The notes under the pieces: generated by a model | The model's input: the letters and a program-made list of their open reading frames with translations, nothing else | Databases searched by the model: none | Told to the model about the DNA's origin: nothing | Shown: one piece after another, positions 6,695-48,150 of the stretch | How the letters are laid out: each line of letters opens with the position of its first letter | Position numbering within the stretch: the stretch's first letter is position 1 | Made by a program: the position numbers and the translations under genes | From: Bugula neritina | Lineage: Eukaryota; Animalia; Bryozoa | DNA length: 64,000 nucleotides | Direction: 5' to 3' | NCBI GenBank assembly: GCA_964035545.1 | Contig: OZ037772.1 | Span: 4,902,233-4,966,232, forward strand

Positions 6695-6786
<92 letters not shown>
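6695..6786. repeat. (TA)n microsatellite
   Basis: Pure TA run; it produces the spurious YIYI ORFs. Confidence 0.95.
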
Positions 6787-6789
<3 letters not shown>

Positions 6790-6793
6790 TGAG

Positions 6794-7469
6794 AAGCATA
6801 ACACTATATATCATAGTATGAGGTTAAAATTGTCGAGCAGTGGTAATCTTGAAAAAGCCTCCTTGAGTTTGAATATTCAATCAATTCAAGAAATTTTGTG
6901 TAATTTTATGTTCTTGAAACTAATAGATTTTCTTCAATGTTATATACACTGTTTCATAAATTTAGTGTTTTGCAACTTTTTTAAACAGACCCTTAAGCAC
7001 ATGTCAAACTTGTCTGAAAACACTTTCAGTTATAGAATTGCAGATTGCAATTTATTGAATGACTTCTTCAACTTTCATTTGACAGCCATAAAAAGTATAA
7101 CATTTAAATTGGCACTGAAATTATTGACATAATAAGTCATTTACTAAAATGGGCTGCTTTAATAATATATAATATATATCTAATAGAAACGCAATGTTGC
7201 TTGCATACAAGTAAAACTTATTTTATGCATACAACCAACCCTTTAATTAGCAGATTTGTATAATTTTGTATTTTGAGTGTAATTTCTCTTCAAAACCTTT
7301 GCATTTAATCAAAGCAATTCTTTTCCACCTACAGTCAATCAGCTATAGATTACCTAATTTTACACCAATGACTCATCCACAGTTCCAGATGCTCTAAAAG
7401 AACATTTGGGTCTCAGCTGGTTAAGAATTATGCATCACTCTGTAATTTATAAACTAAAACTTTATACTT
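6794..7469 (+). repeat. Direct duplication, copy 1 (~680 bp; copy 2 at 11642-12333)
   Basis: agcataacactatatatcatagtatgag ... actttatactt is near-identical to 11642-12333. ORFs 6818..7132 and 11760..11996 give the same peptide. Confidence 0.9.
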
Positions 7470-7470
7470 T

Positions 7471-7540
<70 letters not shown>

Positions 7541-7546
<6 letters not shown>

Positions 7547-7930
7547 GTATACGAGAAACATTGTTATTTATTACTTTATTAGGTAAAGTAATTACACTGA
7601 TATTTCGGGTACCACTGTACCCATCTTCAGAGTAGCAATGAATGAAATTCAAAAATTATTATGTTACGTTAGACGTTATGCATGACACAAAGAATAGAGA
7701 GTGGCAGTTATTGTAAATTATTGAAACTTAGGGAGATAATCTTATTTTATATATTACGCAGGTCAAAAATTATACTGATTTTTTTGTATAAAAAATAAAT
7801 TAGAGTTGACAAAAAAAAAATATCAAAATATAAAAACAGCAAGAATTAATGAAACTATGTGACAGTTGAGTAGTGTGGAGCTATTGATATAGTTTTAGTG
7901 GTATGGAGTAATTTTGTTTATTGAGTTGCG

Positions 7931-7935
<5 letters not shown>
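7541..7935 (-). mobile_element. Penelope-like family B, 3' end/pLTR, inverted
   Basis: Reverse complement of about 9505-9903, flanked by TA runs. Contains an HHR at 7595-7634. Confidence 0.85.
7595..7634 (-). ncRNA. Minimal type I hammerhead ribozyme, family B
   Basis: Minus strand reads UACU-CUGAAGA-U-GGGUAC(AGUG)GUACCC-GAAA-UA-UC^-AGUG. Confidence 0.7.
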
Positions 7936-7967
<32 letters not shown>

Positions 7968-7970
<3 letters not shown>

Positions 7971-8166
7971 GTAGTGTGTTCAGATTGTTAATGATACATA
8001 CAGTAAACTGCACTCGTCAGGTGTTAGACTAAAAATAAATAAAATCTATGAAGCGTACCGATTATTCAAATTTTTACATAAAATAAATTATCATGCTAAA
8101 CACAACGTAAAACGAAATGCAAACATAGTAGTGGATTTGGTGTTATCTATTAATTAATAAAATTGC
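7968..8166 (-). mobile_element. Penelope-like family A pLTR, inverted copy fused to the 5'-truncated element; HHR partly deleted
   Basis: Reverse complement of about 8907-9152 with an internal deletion that removes GAAA and stem III (gatacata|cagtaaactgcactcgtcagg). Confidence 0.85.
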
Positions 8167-8167
8167 A

Positions 8168-8812
8168 TGGTATGACCCCCCATTCTCCAAAAGTGTAACA
8201 AGCAACCTGGGAAAACAATTTTTTTAAATCCTGGAGGAAGAAATACCCAAAGATCACAAAGTCTACAAAATTTTCAACAAAAACAACATAAAACTCAGTT
8301 ACAGCTGCTGCAGAAATTTAAACAACATAATCAACAGCCACAATAAAAGATTACTCAACCCAGCAAACCAACTTTCTCGAGAATGTAACTGCAGAAACAG
8401 CACAGTGTGCCCACTAGATGGAAAATGCCTCACAAAGTGCATCATATACCAAACTACAGTTACAACCAAAAATGGCAGCCAACCCCAGACTTACGTGGGA
8501 ACATCAGAAACAGAATTCAAAACCAGATTGTATAACCACAAATCAACTTTTAACAACAAAACAAAAAAGAACCATACTGAATTGAGCAAATATATCTGGA
8601 AACTAAAAGACAAGAACACCCATTTTGACATAACATGGAAAATTATGAAAAAGACCAACTCATACAACAAAGTCACTAAAAGGTGCAACCTCTGCCTATG
8701 GGAAAAATATTTCATAATATACCAGCCCAGCAAATCTTCCCTTAATAACAGAAATGAGATTCTATCCACATGCAGACATGCCCGTAAGCACTACCTGGGC
8801 AACATCACATAA
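8168..8812 (+). pseudogene. PLE ORF C-terminus (GIY-YIG endonuclease) with an in-frame TAA at 8225
   Basis: CIIY...YVG dyad, catalytic R (TRLYNH), E (LWEK), LN motif and a CxCx5C linker knuckle. Confidence 0.85.
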
Positions 8813-9048
8813 CAATACTAACAATTCTCAACCATAGTACTACCTATTATAAATTACCCTTTCCATCAAACATCTAGCTTTTATAGTCTAATCCTTTAGA
8901 AAAAGAGCAATTTTATTAATTAATAGATAACACCAAATCCACTACTATGTTTGCATTTCGTTTTACGTTGTGTTTAGCATGATAATTTTCTTTATGTAAA
9001 AATTTGAATAATCGGTATGCTTCATAGATTTTATTTATTTTTAGTCCA

Positions 9049-9093
9049 ACACCTGACGAGTGCAGTTTACTGTACGAAACTATATAGTCGTGT
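9049..9093 (+). ncRNA. Minimal type I hammerhead ribozyme, family A
   Basis: ACAC-CUGACGA-GUGCAG(UUUA)CUGUAC-GAAA-CUAUAUAG-UC^-GUGU. The core is intact and stem III is palindromic. Confidence 0.85.
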
Positions 9094-9224
9094 GAGATTT
9101 TTTAAATAAAAAAATATATATGTATCATTAACAATCTGAACACACTACATTATATTAGCTCTGTCCCCGTGATATCGAGCACTTTACTTTGCTGGAACTC
9201 CAACTAGATTGACAATCAGCATAC

Positions 9225-9289
<65 letters not shown>

Positions 9290-9294
<5 letters not shown>

Positions 9295-9925
9295 ATAGGC
9301 ATACGAGAAACATTGTTGATTAATTACTTTATTAATCACACAGGATACATGAACACTGCCATGACATCAATTCTAAAATTTATCAACACATCTCCACCAC
9401 TAATCATGGAAACATATCAATAGACAATGTAACAGTTTTAAATCATTCATTTAAAGGAATCCACCATCGAAAAGTAACCGAAGCACTCTACATTAAACAA
9501 ATAAAACCGCAACTCAATAAACAAAATTACTCCATACCACTAAAACTATATCAATAGCTCCACACTACTCAACTCTCACATAGTTTCACTAATTCTTGCT
9601 GTTTTTATATTTGGATATCTATTTTTTTTGTCAACTCTAATTTATTTTTTATGCAAAAAAATCAGTATAATTTTTGACCAGCGTAATATATAAAATAAGA
9701 TTATCTCCCTAAGTTTCAATAATTTACAATAACTGCCACTCTCTATTCTTTGTGTCATGCATAACGTCTAACGTAACATAATAATTTTTGAATTTCATTC
9801 ATTGCTACTCTGAAGATGGGTACAGTGGTACCCGAAATATCAGTATAATTACTTTACCTAATAAAGTAGTTAATCAACAATGTTTCTCGTATACCTATTT
9901 ATAATCAAATTGCTAGCTCGTAAAG
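9290..9925 (+). mobile_element. 5'-truncated Penelope-like element, family B (Penelope/Poseidon-like GIY-YIG C-terminus plus pLTR), preceded by a short inverted terminus (9290-9333)
   Basis: About 9339-9557 reads HRIHEHCHDINSKIYQHISTTNHGNISIDNVTVLNHSFKGIHHRKVTEALYIKQIKPQLNKQNYSIPLKLYQ* (RIxEH, EALxI, PxLN). HHR at 9806-9845. Flanked by TA runs. Confidence 0.85.
9806..9845 (+). ncRNA. Minimal type I hammerhead ribozyme, family B
   Basis: UACU-CUGAAGA-U-GGGUAC(AGUG)GUACCC-GAAA-UA-UC^-AGUA. Confidence 0.75.
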
Positions 9926-9965
9926 ATATATTTAAATATATAGATATATAGATATATAGATATAT

Positions 9966-10030
<65 letters not shown>

Positions 10031-10035
10031 TATAT

Positions 10036-10094
<59 letters not shown>

Positions 10095-10226
10095 GTATGC
10101 TGATTGTCAATCTAGTTGGAGTTCCAGCGAAGTAAAGTGCTCGATATCACGGGTGACAGAGCTAATATAATGTAGTGTGTTCAGATTGTTAATGATACAT
10201 ATATATTTTTTTATTTAAAAAATCTC

Positions 10227-10271
10227 ACACGACTATATAGTTTCGTACAGTAAACTGCACTCGTCAGGTGT
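10227..10271 (-). ncRNA. Hammerhead ribozyme, family A, minus-strand copy
   Basis: acacgactatatagtttcgtacagtaaactgcactcgtcaggtgt is the exact reverse complement of 9049-9093. Confidence 0.85.
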
Positions 10272-10727
10272 TAGACTAAAAATAAATAAAATCTATGAAG
10301 CATACCGATTATTCAAATTTTTACATAAAGAAAACTATCATGCTAAACACAACGTAAAACGAAATGCAAACATAGTAGTGGATTTGGTGTTATCTATTAA
10401 TTAATTAAATTGCTCTTTTTCTAAAGGATTAGACTATAAATGCTAGATGTTTGATGGAAAGGGTAATTTATAATAGGTAGTACTATGGTTGAGAATTGTT
10501 AGTATTGTTACCATAGTACTACCTATTATAAATTACCCTTTCCATCAAACATCTAGCTTTTATAGTCTAATCCTTTAGAAAAAGAGCAATTTAATTAATT
10601 AATAGATAACACCAAATCCACTACTATGTTTGCATTTCGTTTTATGTTGTGTTTAGCATGATAGTTTTCTTTATGTAAAAATTTGAATAATCGGTATGCT
10701 TCATAGATTTTATTTATTTTTAGTCTA

Positions 10728-10772
10728 ACACCTGACGAGTGCAGTTTACTGTACGAAACTATATAGTCGTGT
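10728..10772 (+). ncRNA. Hammerhead ribozyme, family A, plus-strand copy
   Basis: Identical to the 9049-9093 core. Confidence 0.85.
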
Positions 10773-10827
10773 GAGATTTTTTAAATAAAAAAATATATAT
10801 GTATCATTAACAATCTGAACACACTAC

Positions 10828-10905
<78 letters not shown>

Positions 10906-10911
10906 TATATC

Positions 10912-10968
10912 TGAATCTGTGGACAGCAGCTGTTTCGGGATTTGTCCCCTCATCAGCAAAGAACAGAG
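10912..10968 (-). ncRNA. Retrozyme HHR copy 1 (stem I mismatch)
   Basis: UCUUUG-CUGAUGA-GGGG(ACAAA)UCCC-GAAA-CAG(CUG)CUG-UC^-CACAGA. Confidence 0.75.
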
Positions 10969-11161
10969 TACCATGGCCCACACCTTCGCAATAGTAAAAC
11001 TTATAGTTTTACTAAAGCATATTTAAAAAGTGTGTAAACTTAAGCCAGAGTCACCTAGGAGTCACGAGCATTGCAAAATGCTAGCAGCTTGAGTTTGTGA
11101 CCATGGTGAGAGTGCTCAATCATTTAATGTCATTGCTGAGCATTAAATGAGAGCGTAATAT

Positions 11162-11219
11162 CTCAATCTGTGGACAGCAGCTGTTTCGGGATTTGTTCCC
11201 TCATCAGCACAGAACAGAG
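11162..11219 (-). ncRNA. Retrozyme HHR copy 2
   Basis: UCUGUG-CUGAUGA-GGGA(ACAAA)UCCC-GAAA-CAG(CUG)CUG-UC^-CACAGA. All three stems pair. Confidence 0.9.
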
Positions 11220-11432
11220 TACCATGGCCCACACCTTCGCAATAGTAAAACTTATAGTTTTACTAAAGCATATTTAAAAGGTGTGTAAACTCAAGCCAGA
11301 GTGCTCAAGTAACTCTAGGAGTCACCTAGGAGTCACGAGCATTGCAAAATGCTAGCAGGTTGAGTTTGTGACCATGGTGAGAGTGCTTAATCATTTAATG
11401 TCATTGCTGAGCATTAAATGAGAGCCTAATAT

Positions 11433-11490
11433 CTCAATCTGTGGACAGCAGCTGTTTCGGGATTTGTCCCCTCATCAGCACAGAACAGAG
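11433..11490 (-). ncRNA. Retrozyme HHR copy 3
   Basis: UCUGUG-CUGAUGA-GGGG(ACAAA)UCCC-GAAA-CAG(CUG)CUG-UC^-CACAGA. Confidence 0.9.
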
Positions 11491-11510
11491 TATATATATA
11501 TCTAAATATA

Positions 11511-12333
<823 letters not shown>

Positions 12334-12553
12334 TATGCCAGTTTTACCAACACTCTGTAGGACTTGAATAGTAAAACTTTGAATCTGTAACAGATCTGCA
12401 ATCAAACAGTCTGGATACAGATTGTTGGAATTTGAACAAAAGATGATAATGATATAATCTAAACTATTGACTGTATCAAGCAAGCCGATAACATTGTTTA
12501 TCCTGTTTTGGGTTTTTTGAACTTATGATAAAACAGCGTTCTACTGTCATTGC

Positions 12554-14632
12554 TGTCTTGTCTTGTCTTGTCTTGTCTTGATTTAGTTCCAAGACCCCAG
12601 ATAGGGGAAAGGTGGAACTATCGGATGTTCAGGTCTTTTTTTATTAGTCTGCTAGTGTTTCTCCCGTGCGTAGTTCACGGGCTGTTCTAATGAGGAAGCT
12701 ATGCAGGAACTTATTAGTATTACAGGATATTGAATTAAAAAAGTTACTGTCCCCAATATTGGTATTACGGAGAGATTTCATGGAGTTAAGAGTGTTAATT
12801 AGGTTAGGGAAGAAGGCTTCATGCTGCAACACTTTGAAGAATAGCGTGAATCTGTGTTCTTGTCTGGATTTATTTAAAGCCTTTAAGTTTAACTCTGCCT
12901 TGGATTCGGTCACTGAGACATCCCAGCCTTTTAAGTTTTTTACAAAATGTACTGCCTTGTTTTGAACTTTCTCTAGATTGTTGCTTAGCATGAGATGTGC
13001 AGGATCCCAAATTTGCAGGCCTACTCTAGAAGCGGTCTACACAGGGTAGTGTATGCTATGAGCTTAACTTTAACTGGAGCATCATAGAGTACATTTTTGA
13101 TTAATCCTAAAATACGCATTGCTTTATTGACTACTGAGTTTATGTGATAATCCCACTTTAGATCAGGTACCAAATAGATTCCTAGGTATTTTACACAGCT
13201 ACTTTGTACTAATTGTTCGTTGCTCAAATAATAAGTGTGCGTCATAGGTTTAGGGCTTTTATCAAACACAATAATGTTGCCTTTTGTTGCATTTAATTTC
13301 ATGGAATTTTTAATACTCCAGTTGTGTAGAGCGTTAAGGTCATTTTGCAAATTTTCCTTGTCTTCGTCTTTAGATATATGCGTATATGGTATAGTGTCAT
13401 TCGCGAAGAGCCTTACAGCGCAGTATTTTACACATTTAGCGATGTCATTAATGAAAAGTGTGAAAAGTGCAGGCCCTAAAACGCAACCTTGAAGGACACC
13501 TGAAGTAACAGCTACAGCATCAGATTTGTGGCCTTTAATCACCACTCTCTGAAAACGACTGGTTAGAAACGAGGATATCCATTTTACTAAAAGAGGATTT
13601 ACTTTGTACTCAATAAGTTTCTGAATCAACAGATGATTGGGAACTAAATCAAAGGCCTTAGAGAAATCTAGCACTGCCGCATGTGTAGCCATTCCATTGT
13701 CCATATTACTCAATATGTCATGTGTTAGGCAGGCCAATTGAGTTGTGCAAGACAGGCGACTTCTAAAACCATGCTGGTTTATGGACAGGATCTCATTCAA
13801 TTTGTTTTGCATAAGGTGAAGTATAATGTGCTCCATCATTTTACAGACTATTGATGTTAAGGATATTGGTCTATAGTTAGAGGGTAACTCACGATTTCCT
13901 TGTTTGAATATTGGTGTGACATGAGCCAGCTTCCACTCTGATGGAAGTGTACTTGTTGTTAATGTATAGTTGTAGATGGAAGCTAATAGGGAAGAAATAA
14001 TTTCAGGGGAGAGCAGTAGCTTTTGTTTGCTAATAGAGTCTGGCCCTGGAGCTTTACCATTTTTGAGAGACTTAATCAATTTTAACACACCTTCAGAAGT
14101 TACTAATATGTTATCTGCATCAGTTGGAGCCGGAGCTTCTGGGAGCACACATGCTGGTGTAAAAACACTGTGAAAATACAACTTCAAAGTATTAGCAATG
14201 TCACATAAATCATTAGAGCTGGTCTTTTCACTAATTTGAATGCTTGAAATACTGTTATTGTTGCCTTTAATTTCTTTAACATATCTGTAAAAAGGTTTCG
14301 AGTCTCCATTTGCCAATGGGTAGTATAACTTTTCACACATGAAGTCTTTTTTGAGTATTTTAAATAGTTTTTTGTTTTCACGCCTTAGTTTTTTGTATTT
14401 GTCAAATAAAACAGAATCACCTGTGAGCTTGTATCGTGAGTAAAGTTTTCTTTGCTTGTTGCAAGCTCTTTGAGCATCTTTATTAAACCAAACAGGTTGA
14501 AAATGTTTTCTAGGTTTAAATTGCTTTTTAGGTACATGGTTAGTTATTGCCGAATGTAATCCATTTCTAAATGTAGACCAAACAGTATCAATGGGCTGTA
14601 CATCGTTCATTAGAGAGTTCACTTCTGAGAGC
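12554..14632 (-). mobile_element. 5'-truncated non-LTR retrotransposon (CR1/L2-group LINE) with a 3' stem-loop and (CAAGA)5 tail
   Basis: RT motifs [45 protein letters not shown] and KYLG are present. The C-terminus continues in ORF 12644..12991 after a stop and frameshift. (TCTTG)5 at 12556-12580; hairpin at 12584-12620. Confidence 0.92.
12644..14632 (-). pseudogene. LINE ORF2 reverse transcriptase (disrupted)
   Basis: The catalytic YxDD reads FAND, there is a premature TAG at 13021-13023 followed by a frameshift, and no endonuclease domain is present (truncated at the TA run). Confidence 0.88.
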
Positions 14633-14818
<186 letters not shown>

Positions 14819-46264: not shown

Positions 46265-47289
46265 TGCATGAAATTATCTAACCATTCCTGACGAAGAATC
46301 GAGATAATAACTCCAAAGTTGGTCAGTTGAAACCACAGCAATAATACTTTAATCCTTATAATTGTCAGGTTTAATTTTATACCAAGCCCCAATAAGTACA
46401 TATCACTATGACAACACAGCCTAAGCACCTCCAATGCAAGAAATTTAGTATTGTGGTGCTACAAATCCTCCAGTTGCAAATGAGTAGAGCTTTCATGATT
46501 ATTGGTCTACCATAATGTTTATTTAGTTTTAAGGACTAGCATAAATGCTATTATATGTGGAAGGTATTTGAAAAGCTTCCAACTCCATCTTCAACTACGG
46601 GCTATTATAATTATGCCGATAAACGAGATACTACACTCAGACTGCCCTGTTATAGTACTATGATTGGCTACTGCAAAATTTTTGCCGATAGACAACATTT
46701 ATTTATGATGTAATGTATCTCGTATTGGTACATAAGTGTTATGTCTGAGGACGAGATACTGTGAAATTATGCCCTGTCAAATTTATATAATAATACGGCT
46801 TGTTTGAAATTATTGTGAAATTTGCCTTCAACTTTTGGTATTAGGTTTTATTTAATTACTAATAAGTGACAAGATTTTTTGTCTTAACTTAACTAGTCAA
46901 TAGCATTTTAAGTGCATTTTCTATTCTAAAAAGCTGTTCAAAGTGATAGGAGACCAAAATTCTCAATATATAGAATCAATCATTTCAATTAGCGACCTCA
47001 AAGCGACTGCCTGCGAACTGAAAAAACCAAAACAATAACAAAATTCGATAAAACCAAGCATAACATTGCAATTTGAACATTTTTGTTTATTGTATATTTT
47101 ATAAAAAATGCCTAAATAAAATCAGCTGGGTGGGCATAATTTAATAACAGTTTGTTGCATTGAAAACTTGCTAGTCATTTATTCAGACTTGATGTTTATA
47201 ATCATTTGTAGACTACTAAGCTAAGTTATTAACATCACTTACAAAAAAATTTGGAGCAACTTTACCACGAACGTGTTTCTAATGTTGCG

Positions 47290-47345
47290 TTTTGTTCTGA
47301 TGAGAGGACAAATCCCAAAACAGCTGCTGTCCATAGATTGAGATA
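47290..47345 (+). ncRNA. Degenerate solo copy of the retrozyme HHR
   Basis: ctgatgagaggacaaatcccAaaacagctgctgtccatagattgaga matches the 11433-11490 HHR, with GAAA changed to AAAA. Confidence 0.8.
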
Positions 47346-48108: not shown

Positions 48109-48150
48109 CTACTAATATTTCGGGTACCACTGTACCCATCTTCAGAGTAG
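48109..48150 (-). ncRNA. Family B HHR variant (AUU cleavage triplet)
   Basis: CUACU-CUGAAGA-U-GGGUAC(AGUG)GUACCC-GAAA-UA-UU^-AGUAG. Confidence 0.7.

Follow-up and report, generated by a model that had tools for sequence, protein, structure and literature searches.

A putative non-LTR retrozyme family with a fixed 3′ end in (TA)n microsatellites of the bryozoan Bugula neritina

Introduction

Newt satellite 2 and Schistosoma Sm-alpha are short repeats, dispersed or in tandem, that are transcribed into self-cleaving RNAs with type I hammerheads; stem III of these ribozymes is very short, and they commonly work as dimers. To our knowledge, no (TA)n targeting has been reported for either repeat. 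A tandem array of hammerhead-bearing units occurs in the genome of the bryozoan Bugula neritina, on the minus strand at 10907-11492 of a 64,000-nucleotide (nt) stretch (GenBank assembly GCA_964035545.1, contig OZ037772.1, positions 4,902,233 to 4,966,232 of the forward strand; hereafter the window, to which all plain coordinates refer). Taken together, the observations are probably best explained if this array is an old insertion that belongs to a young and dispersed family of non-coding, 271-nt retrozymes without long terminal repeats (LTRs), a family that would spread by the life cycle proposed below.

Metazoan non-LTR retrozymes were described in 2020 by Cervera and de la Peña, with families in Acropora millepora (225 and 245 nt), mussel and axolotl (PMC7229834). 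The B. neritina family resembles them in that its units, a few hundred nt long, are arranged in tandem and each contain a type I hammerhead. Like them, it lacks LTRs and coding capacity, has a GC content below 50%, is dispersed in many copies, and has a stable monomer with extensive self-pairing that still allows the ribozyme to fold. Moreover, the units are joined head to tail and fall within the range of about 150-450 bp, the copies carry signs of retrotransposition, and the flanks are (TA)n rather than LTRs, as read without a formal search for a primer-binding site (PBS) or polypurine tract (PPT). By every sequence-level criterion of the class, the element would thus be a metazoan non-LTR retrozyme (PMC7229834), which is also how an earlier reading of the window, here called the initial annotation, had classified its tandem type I hammerhead units. 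There are differences as well. The coral family likewise has two size variants with a 20-nt indel, but here the indel is a deletion at a single locus and not a family polymorphism. Insertion into (TA)n with one invariant 3′ end, as found here, is undescribed in that paper, from which the term "microsatellite" is absent, the sequence is species-specific, and the present family is known from DNA and assembled contigs.

Plant LTR retrozymes and viroid-like circular RNAs share with the family a hammerhead-processed RNA of a few hundred nt that is proposed to circularize, and a compact fold. Assignment to the plant elements, which have LTRs, type III hammerheads, a PBS, a PPT and a 4-bp target-site duplication, was rejected on the type I topology, the absence of LTRs and the (TA)n flanks seen here. 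A replicating circular RNA of the viroid or hepatitis delta virus kind, with ribozymes in both polarities and no DNA copies, was also rejected, as the hammerhead motifs of the array are confined to one strand and hundreds of genomic copies exist.

Penelope-like elements (PLEs) of the Hydra clade, almost all of which insert into (TA)n, make this targeting an already known property of PLEs (Craig et al., 2021; PMC8557442). Like the retrozyme, they carry a type I hammerhead close to the 3′ end and insert into (TA)n; their copies, too, are truncated at the 5′ end and can be partial, in tandem or inverted. In this genome they occupy the same microsatellite tracts. Unlike them, the retrozyme has no open reading frame (ORF) and consists of precise 271-nt head-to-tail repeats, and its stem III measures 4 bp, against 1 bp in one of the PLE hammerheads described below (family 3). 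Mobilization of retrozymes by PLE machinery is an earlier proposal (PMC7229834, discussion; Li, Clavereau and Pollet, 2026, bioRxiv 10.64898/2026.07.22.740005). The latter study resembles the present case in that retrozymes and PLEs co-occur in a single genome and PLEs are proposed to mobilize the retrozymes. However, it rests on vertebrate phylogenetic distribution and on similarity to PLE pseudo-LTRs (pLTRs), whereas here no similarity was found, and what connects retrozyme and PLEs is a common (TA)n target and a common layout of the termini, in the genome of an invertebrate with Hydra-clade PLEs. A literature search found no paper with the ribozyme sequence, and none in which retrozymes are connected to the targeting of microsatellites or to an invariant 3′ junction. 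The suggestion of the initial annotation that the family is undescribed therefore stands in part: only the species-specific family appears to be uncatalogued, the class having been known since 2020 and its tie to PLEs since 2026.

Structure of the array and its hammerhead ribozymes

Read along the minus strand, the array opens with a 5′-truncated unit, continues with monomers of 271 and then 251 nt, and closes with a terminal stub of 15 nt. The truncated first unit (11444-11492) covers monomer positions of about 223-271 and carries hammerhead 1 through its GUC; BLAST aligns positions 223-271 with 11492-11444 at 98% identity, the initial TA being ambiguous with the adjoining (TA)n. Monomer A (11173-11443) has the full family length, bears 6 private substitutions relative to the family consensus, and is flanked by hammerheads 1 and 2, in both of which core and stems are intact. 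Monomer B (10922-11172) is a family unit with 3 private substitutions and a private 20-nt deletion, the junction of which (11042-11061) lies between short ACTC direct repeats. By column, the two monomers are 95% identical, differing by one 20-nt indel and 7 substitutions. The terminal stub, CACAGATTcAGATAT (10907-10921; lower case denotes a private change), corresponds to monomer positions 1-15 and closes with an ATAT box that merges into (TA)n. It is the invariant 3′ end of the family, and its ATAT box is the putative priming site for cDNA synthesis. On the 3′ side the array is bordered by a (TA)n tract at 10830-10910, either the target microsatellite or a tail, and on the 5′ side by another at 11491-11642. 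The first nucleotide of the array corresponds to about monomer position 223, within the 5′ strand of stem I of the hammerhead, and the last lies 15 nt beyond the third cleavage site. The initial annotation had the coordinates and anatomy right, including the three GUC sites, the two monomer lengths, the single indel and the beginning and end of the array in hammerhead sequence.

The hammerheads lie at 11429-11490 (hammerhead 1, GUC triplet at 11446-11444), 11158-11220 (hammerhead 2, GUC at 11175-11173) and 10907-10969 (hammerhead 3, GUC at 10924-10922), with predicted cleavage after the C at 11444, 11173 and 10922, respectively. The descriptor CTGATGAG-N9-14-CGAAAC-N6-12-GTC had exactly three matches, against 0.00 expected from 100 shuffles, and these are the three places at which minus-strand type I hammerheads had been annotated. 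Read by hand, the conserved core is complete (CUGAUGA, GAAA, the A15.1-U16.1 pair and C17). Stem I has 6 bp, an internal loop and 3 bp more, and is open; stem II has 4 bp with the loop ACAAA, and stem III has 4 bp with the loop CUG. This arrangement is that of a type I hammerhead with a predicted cleavage site after GUC.

The copies are not equivalent. In hammerhead 2 the closing pair of stem II is A-U where the family has G-U. The initial annotation listed this as a structure-preserving change between copies; a reading as structural covariation is not supported, because the change is a single private G-to-A transition, and all 37 other copies have G. In hammerhead 3 the core is intact, and a private G-to-U change creates a C·U mismatch at the third pair of stem I, accompanied by a G-to-C change in the distal helix. 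In its best fold stem I is no longer properly formed, and this ribozyme is probably impaired.

The minimum free energy (MFE) fold of the 271-nt monomer has -98.1 kcal/mol (z = -7.75), and none of 200 shuffles was as good. The self-complementary segments singled out in the initial annotation are actual helices of this fold. When the family consensus is folded as a circle, it reaches -99.6 kcal/mol with 72% of its nucleotides paired, and ribozyme stems I and II still form.

The 271-nt family and the age of this copy

A first look at the 216-Mb assembly gave 694 candidate copies. Scored copies show 96-98% identity to the window monomer and occur on all large contigs (C1-C9). The consensus, built from 39 monomers, is 271 nt long, with a GC content of 43% and a longest stop-free run of 45 aa; family copies are about 99% identical to it. 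Sister arrays hold 1 to 4 units, head to tail. The family is thus young, dispersed and non-coding. Near-identical sequence is also present in sequencing runs of 10 studies, which comprise two organism labels (A and B) as well as marine biofilm, seawater and symbiont metagenomes.

Within this family, the window array reads as an older, slightly damaged copy, with 6 and 3 private substitutions in its two monomers, one deletion and an impaired third ribozyme. At all seven sites where monomers A and B differ by substitution, one of them has the family consensus and the other a change found in at most 1 of the 37 other monomers; all seven substitutions are private to the locus. The 20-nt deletion is in none of the 37 other monomers, its junction occurs once in the 216-Mb genome, and it was not seen in the contigs of four public runs. 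Because the junction is unique in the genome, a 251-nt circle would be at most a product of this single locus, and even that is unlikely. The 251-nt circular RNA that the initial annotation had predicted alongside the 271-nt form is accordingly not supported as a biological species. The deletion and the weakening of ribozyme 3 are best explained by decay in place.

Insertion junctions and array lengths

Genome-wide, the family has a single, nucleotide-precise 3′ end. In 23 of 23 distinct arrays the sequence stops at monomer position 15, with ...GAGATAT running into (AT)n. Exact searches of the genome found at least 207 such termini and 49 unit-to-unit junctions, with no matches in the control, which indicates that most insertions consist of about one unit or less. 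The 5′ ends vary by truncation, and most of them also adjoin (TA)n.

The 5′ ends are not evenly spread. Ten of 23 fall within positions 257-271 or 1-16, against 2.6 expected (p = 1e-4, for an interval chosen post hoc). The clustered ends (12, 12, 12, 6, 6, 4, 3, 267, 265, 263 and 259) lie at the proposed priming site or just past it in the direction of reverse transcription. Array lengths show a corresponding preference for whole laps, with 11 of 25 blocks measuring 1.01-1.08, 1.98-2.01, 3.04-3.07 or 4.02 units; both statistics rest on 23-25 blocks. Monomers are 100% identical within arrays L003, L009 and L018 and between the first two monomers of L024, compared with a mean of 98.3% between arrays.

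One locus records a chimera (L055, about 700-1260; G000:C8:1883199-1883760). Here a retrozyme 3′ module, made up of the hammerhead, the 15-nt stub and (TA)n, is joined to a piece of an unrelated dispersed repeat, and two copies with differing 5′ truncations stand 208 nt apart. The arrangement looks like a template switch of the reverse transcriptase (RT) that was later duplicated. It also accounts for a supposed 208-nt hammerhead unit on C8, which was considered as a second retrozyme family and rejected once its chimeric make-up was apparent.

The fixed 3′ end, the 5′ truncation, the lap lengths, the uniform arrays and the template switch together fit target-primed reverse transcription (TPRT). 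Since synthesis crosses the ribozyme cut and ligation site, the template would be either a circular RNA or an uncleaved multimer. At the level of the family, the invariant 3′ ends, the preference for whole laps and the uniformity of monomers inside an array lend support to the rolling-circle cDNA multimer that the initial annotation had proposed as the origin of the array.

In three places, closely paired retrozyme termini are convergent or divergent within one TA tract: G000:C2:33418492(+)/33418575(-), C4:17446226(+)/17446495(-) and C3:3688123(-)/3688746(+). Such pairs would follow if nicking and priming can take place on either strand of the palindromic (TA)n.

The window itself contains a second, decayed solo 3′ fragment of the family (47289-47345, plus strand). 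It spans monomer positions of about 229-271, the 15-nt stub and a short (TA)5, and its hammerhead core GAAA reads AAAA.

RNA evidence

Contigs from an oligo-dT metatranscriptome cover the whole monomer, and one contig of 220 nt spans the 271-to-1 junction. A run labelled as metagenomic RNA-Seq contributed 206 contigs on the unit.

Penelope-like elements in the same (TA)n tracts

The sequence beside the array is a hub (7470-10830) of (TA)n full of 5′-truncated, tandem and inverted copies of two other hammerhead-bearing families, here called families 2 and 3. With a loosened hammerhead pattern, the window yields 12 hammerhead-like motifs, against 0.76 expected. Family 2 has the core CUGACGAG at 9053 (plus), 10231 (minus) and 10732 (plus), with inverted arms of 325-359 nt. 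Family 3 has the core CUGAAGA and a 1-bp stem III, at 7593 (minus) and 9810 (plus), and again farther away at 48110 (minus) and 48736 (plus). Beside the array, every terminus of these two families (cores CUGACGA and CUGAAGA) is fused to (TA)n.

One element of the hub carries an ORF of 135 aa (8405-8812, plus strand) that encodes the C-terminal GIY-YIG endonuclease of a 5′-truncated Hydra-clade PLE. It is located about 240 nt upstream of the element's own hammerhead (9053-9089), with the (TA)n junction at 9227. The ORF had no Pfam match. A first look at the genome counted 679 copies of it, the longest open frames reaching 715 aa, and public data contain 13,677 representative relatives. Its endonuclease lacks the CCHH cysteines and has the CxCx5C linker and the motif CxxC..E..N..CxH. 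Six full-length public homologues (690-720 aa) display RW(R/K), DKT, FD..DFYPSI, YRDD, CxCx5C and CxxC..E..N..CxH and have no cysteine between GIY and YIG, a set that matches the published description of the Hydra clade. The RT motifs are thus known from the public homologues, and the genome's own 700-715-aa frames that end in the endonuclease are known by length.

The four PLE subfamilies read in the genome all end in ...TATAT(AT)n with a hammerhead upstream. The 3′ ends of family 2 fall at two AT-rich sites, either ...CTACATT/ATAT or, about 85 nt further on, ...GCATACATT/ATAT (10829 versus 9227 and 10100; the slash marks the junction). This suggests that priming happens wherever the PLE RNA can pair with the TA target. 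Hydra-clade PLEs are likely the source of the enzyme that mobilizes the retrozyme, by a circumstantial link that consists of the shared target, terminus layout and tracts.

Two provisional views were overturned by these elements. The first, that the genome has no PLEs, had been drawn from a single Pfam GIY-YIG match, at a locus with just two ORFs, both shorter than 90 aa. It is refuted by Hydra-clade copies that escape Pfam: the endonuclease is not recognized by the GIY-YIG model, nor the RT of the six full-length homologues by RVT_1, even though fold and motifs are clear. The other, that no further hammerhead family exists, came from the pattern CTGATGAGH...CGAAAC (8 genome matches versus 4 in the control). 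The PLE cores, which read CUGACGA, CUGAAGA, CUGAGGA or, in L030 and L043, CUGAUGA followed by U, fall outside this pattern. A pair of hammerhead matches 8.7 kb apart on C6 was also considered as a PLE and proved to be a decayed segmental duplication.

Other candidate partners were rejected. Among four abundant families of long interspersed elements (LINEs), three have tails that are (CAAA)n-like, poly(A) or a GAAGTATC repeat, and in the fourth a repeat tail is not evident; (TA)n is the end of none of them. The RT ORF at 13021-14652 belongs to an unrelated LINE. That element, a 5′-truncated LINE at 12554-14652 on the minus strand, has a 543-aa RT ORF (RVT_1, 109 bits) and an (ACAAG)n-type tail, and shares 41-44% identity with two LINE families that are abundant in the genome.

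The hub, including the retrozyme array, is bracketed by a 794-nt direct duplication (6695-7469 and 11543-12334, 93.8% identical) made up of (TA)n and a further stretch of about 690 nt that looks unique. Possible origins are a target duplication of great length, unequal exchange between TA tracts, or another TA-targeting element.

Proposed life cycle and alternative explanations

In the proposed life cycle, the arrays may be transcribed, as the contigs faintly suggest. The hammerheads, whose textbook motif is intact, would cut after GUC and free 271-nt monomers. By analogy with the literature on these elements, a host ligase would then close the monomers into highly base-paired circles. An RT with an endonuclease that nicks TA microsatellites would take the nicked (TA)n 3′ end as primer. 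To judge from the junction anatomy, this primer would anneal to the AUAU box (monomer positions 12-15), which follows closely on the 3′ side of the ligation site, and copying would cross the ligation junction, run for one or more laps and often stop soon after meeting its own start. The outcome would be 5′-truncated or whole-lap tandem arrays inside (TA)n.

Several observations weigh against this scheme. The RNA data consist of contigs only, which carry no information on ends, strand, circularity or level, and carry-over of DNA is possible. At three private sites of monomer A (11311, 11320 and 11388), every contig has the consensus base, so expression of this locus is not indicated by the contigs. 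Mutation density is the same inside and outside the ribozyme (0.30 vs 0.34 per site, p = 0.56), which indicates that genomic copies decay neutrally, with no visible constraint. The interval that gave the excess of 5′ ends was picked after the data had been seen, in a small sample selected for full-length units. Comparison of the 271-nt unit with the 3′ regions read from four PLE subfamilies, which represent part of the PLE diversity of the genome, showed no sequence similarity. Finally, no Rfam hammerhead model reached its gathering score on the array, so that the covariance-model check proposed in the initial annotation turned out negative. On the 76-nt ribozyme stretch the top two models were RAGATH-1-hammerhead at 19.2 bits (gathering score 56.3) and Hammerhead_3 at 13.2 bits (48.5). 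Across the genome, Rfam Hammerhead_1 gave one sub-threshold match of 25.4 bits at most, which is a PLE hammerhead; given this low ceiling, the Rfam misses are read as insensitivity of the models and not as absence of the motif. The Rfam matches that did appear at gathering score or E<=10 over 801 nt (among them mir-297 and a pestivirus untranslated region) were discarded as (TA)n artefacts.

The same junctions might also arise without a circle, in the manner of a short interspersed element (SINE). A linear, uncleaved read-through transcript ending in genomic (UA)n would give the same 3′ end if a PLE or LINE enzyme primed it at nicked (TA)n; tandem units would be carried over from a parental array or generated by slippage on the template, with the hammerhead as a passenger. 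A fixed 3′ end with 5′ truncation is indeed the classic signature of linear TPRT, and most insertions are of one unit or less, as the 207 termini and 49 internal junctions show. Several 5′ ends at positions 3-6 are close to the end expected from ribozyme cleavage, and the alternative AT-rich 3′ ends of PLE family 2 imply that TA-pairing priming is possible without a circle. However, the template would have to keep an uncleaved hammerhead, by its motif apparently fully competent, 15 nt from its 3′ end. Moreover, 4 members of the 5′-end cluster (259-267, out of 11) are situated upstream of the site of cleavage, at positions that a cleaved 5′ end cannot produce. Multi-unit arrays of identical monomers would still need an origin, and published retrozymes accumulate mainly as circles (PMC7229834). 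This linear route is therefore considered unlikely, though it is the strongest competitor of a circular template.

The neighbourhood of PLEs raises the question of whether the array is an independent element at all, or the repeated terminal part (pLTR) of a degraded autonomous PLE. PLEs do form partial copies in tandem and inverted orientation and have hammerheads close to the 3′ end, remnants of them are found at most 100 nt from the array, and a 2026 preprint derives retrozymes from PLE pLTRs (bioRxiv 10.64898/2026.07.22.740005). Nevertheless, none of the 23 arrays adjoins an ORF or an RT or endonuclease remnant that continues the unit, and the head-to-tail joints between units fall precisely at 271 nt. 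The monomer is also dissimilar from the four available PLE 3′ regions, and its ribozyme core is unlike every PLE hammerhead of this analysis. A pLTR origin is consequently improbable. Spread of an ordinary satellite at the DNA level, by unequal crossing-over or segmental duplication with inconsequential hammerhead-like motifs, would account for the tandem organization and has a parallel in the local duplication near the hub (6695-7469 and 11543-12334). It is hard to reconcile with at least 207 dispersed loci on all large contigs that combine one nucleotide-precise 3′ end with variable 5′ truncation and unrelated flanks, with about one unit at most loci, or with a chimeric copy fused to another transcript, and it is scarcely credible. 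Insertion of a retrozyme from a circular RNA template is thus preferred here.

Implications

Taken alone, the window locus is ordinary, being one decaying copy of a known type of element. It also reveals a gap in current models: because of the limited reach of the Rfam hammerhead models and of Pfam RVT_1 and GIY-YIG, standard annotation would miss the retrozyme, its likely partner and at least 679 PLE copies. It is possible, though short of probable, that the junction anatomy is the first nucleotide-resolution record of the integration of an animal retrozyme, involving a PLE-type enzyme (probably of the Hydra clade), AUAU priming on the circle, whole laps and a stall at its own primer. If so, retrozymes would be tied to a specific PLE clade through the choice of target and not through sequence descent. 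The published retrozyme model leaves the copying enzyme and the priming of cDNA unsettled, and the B. neritina family yields falsifiable predictions on both. It is a good system in which to study the integration step, and the "properly primed circRNA" of the retrozyme cycle would, if this account is true, become directly testable.

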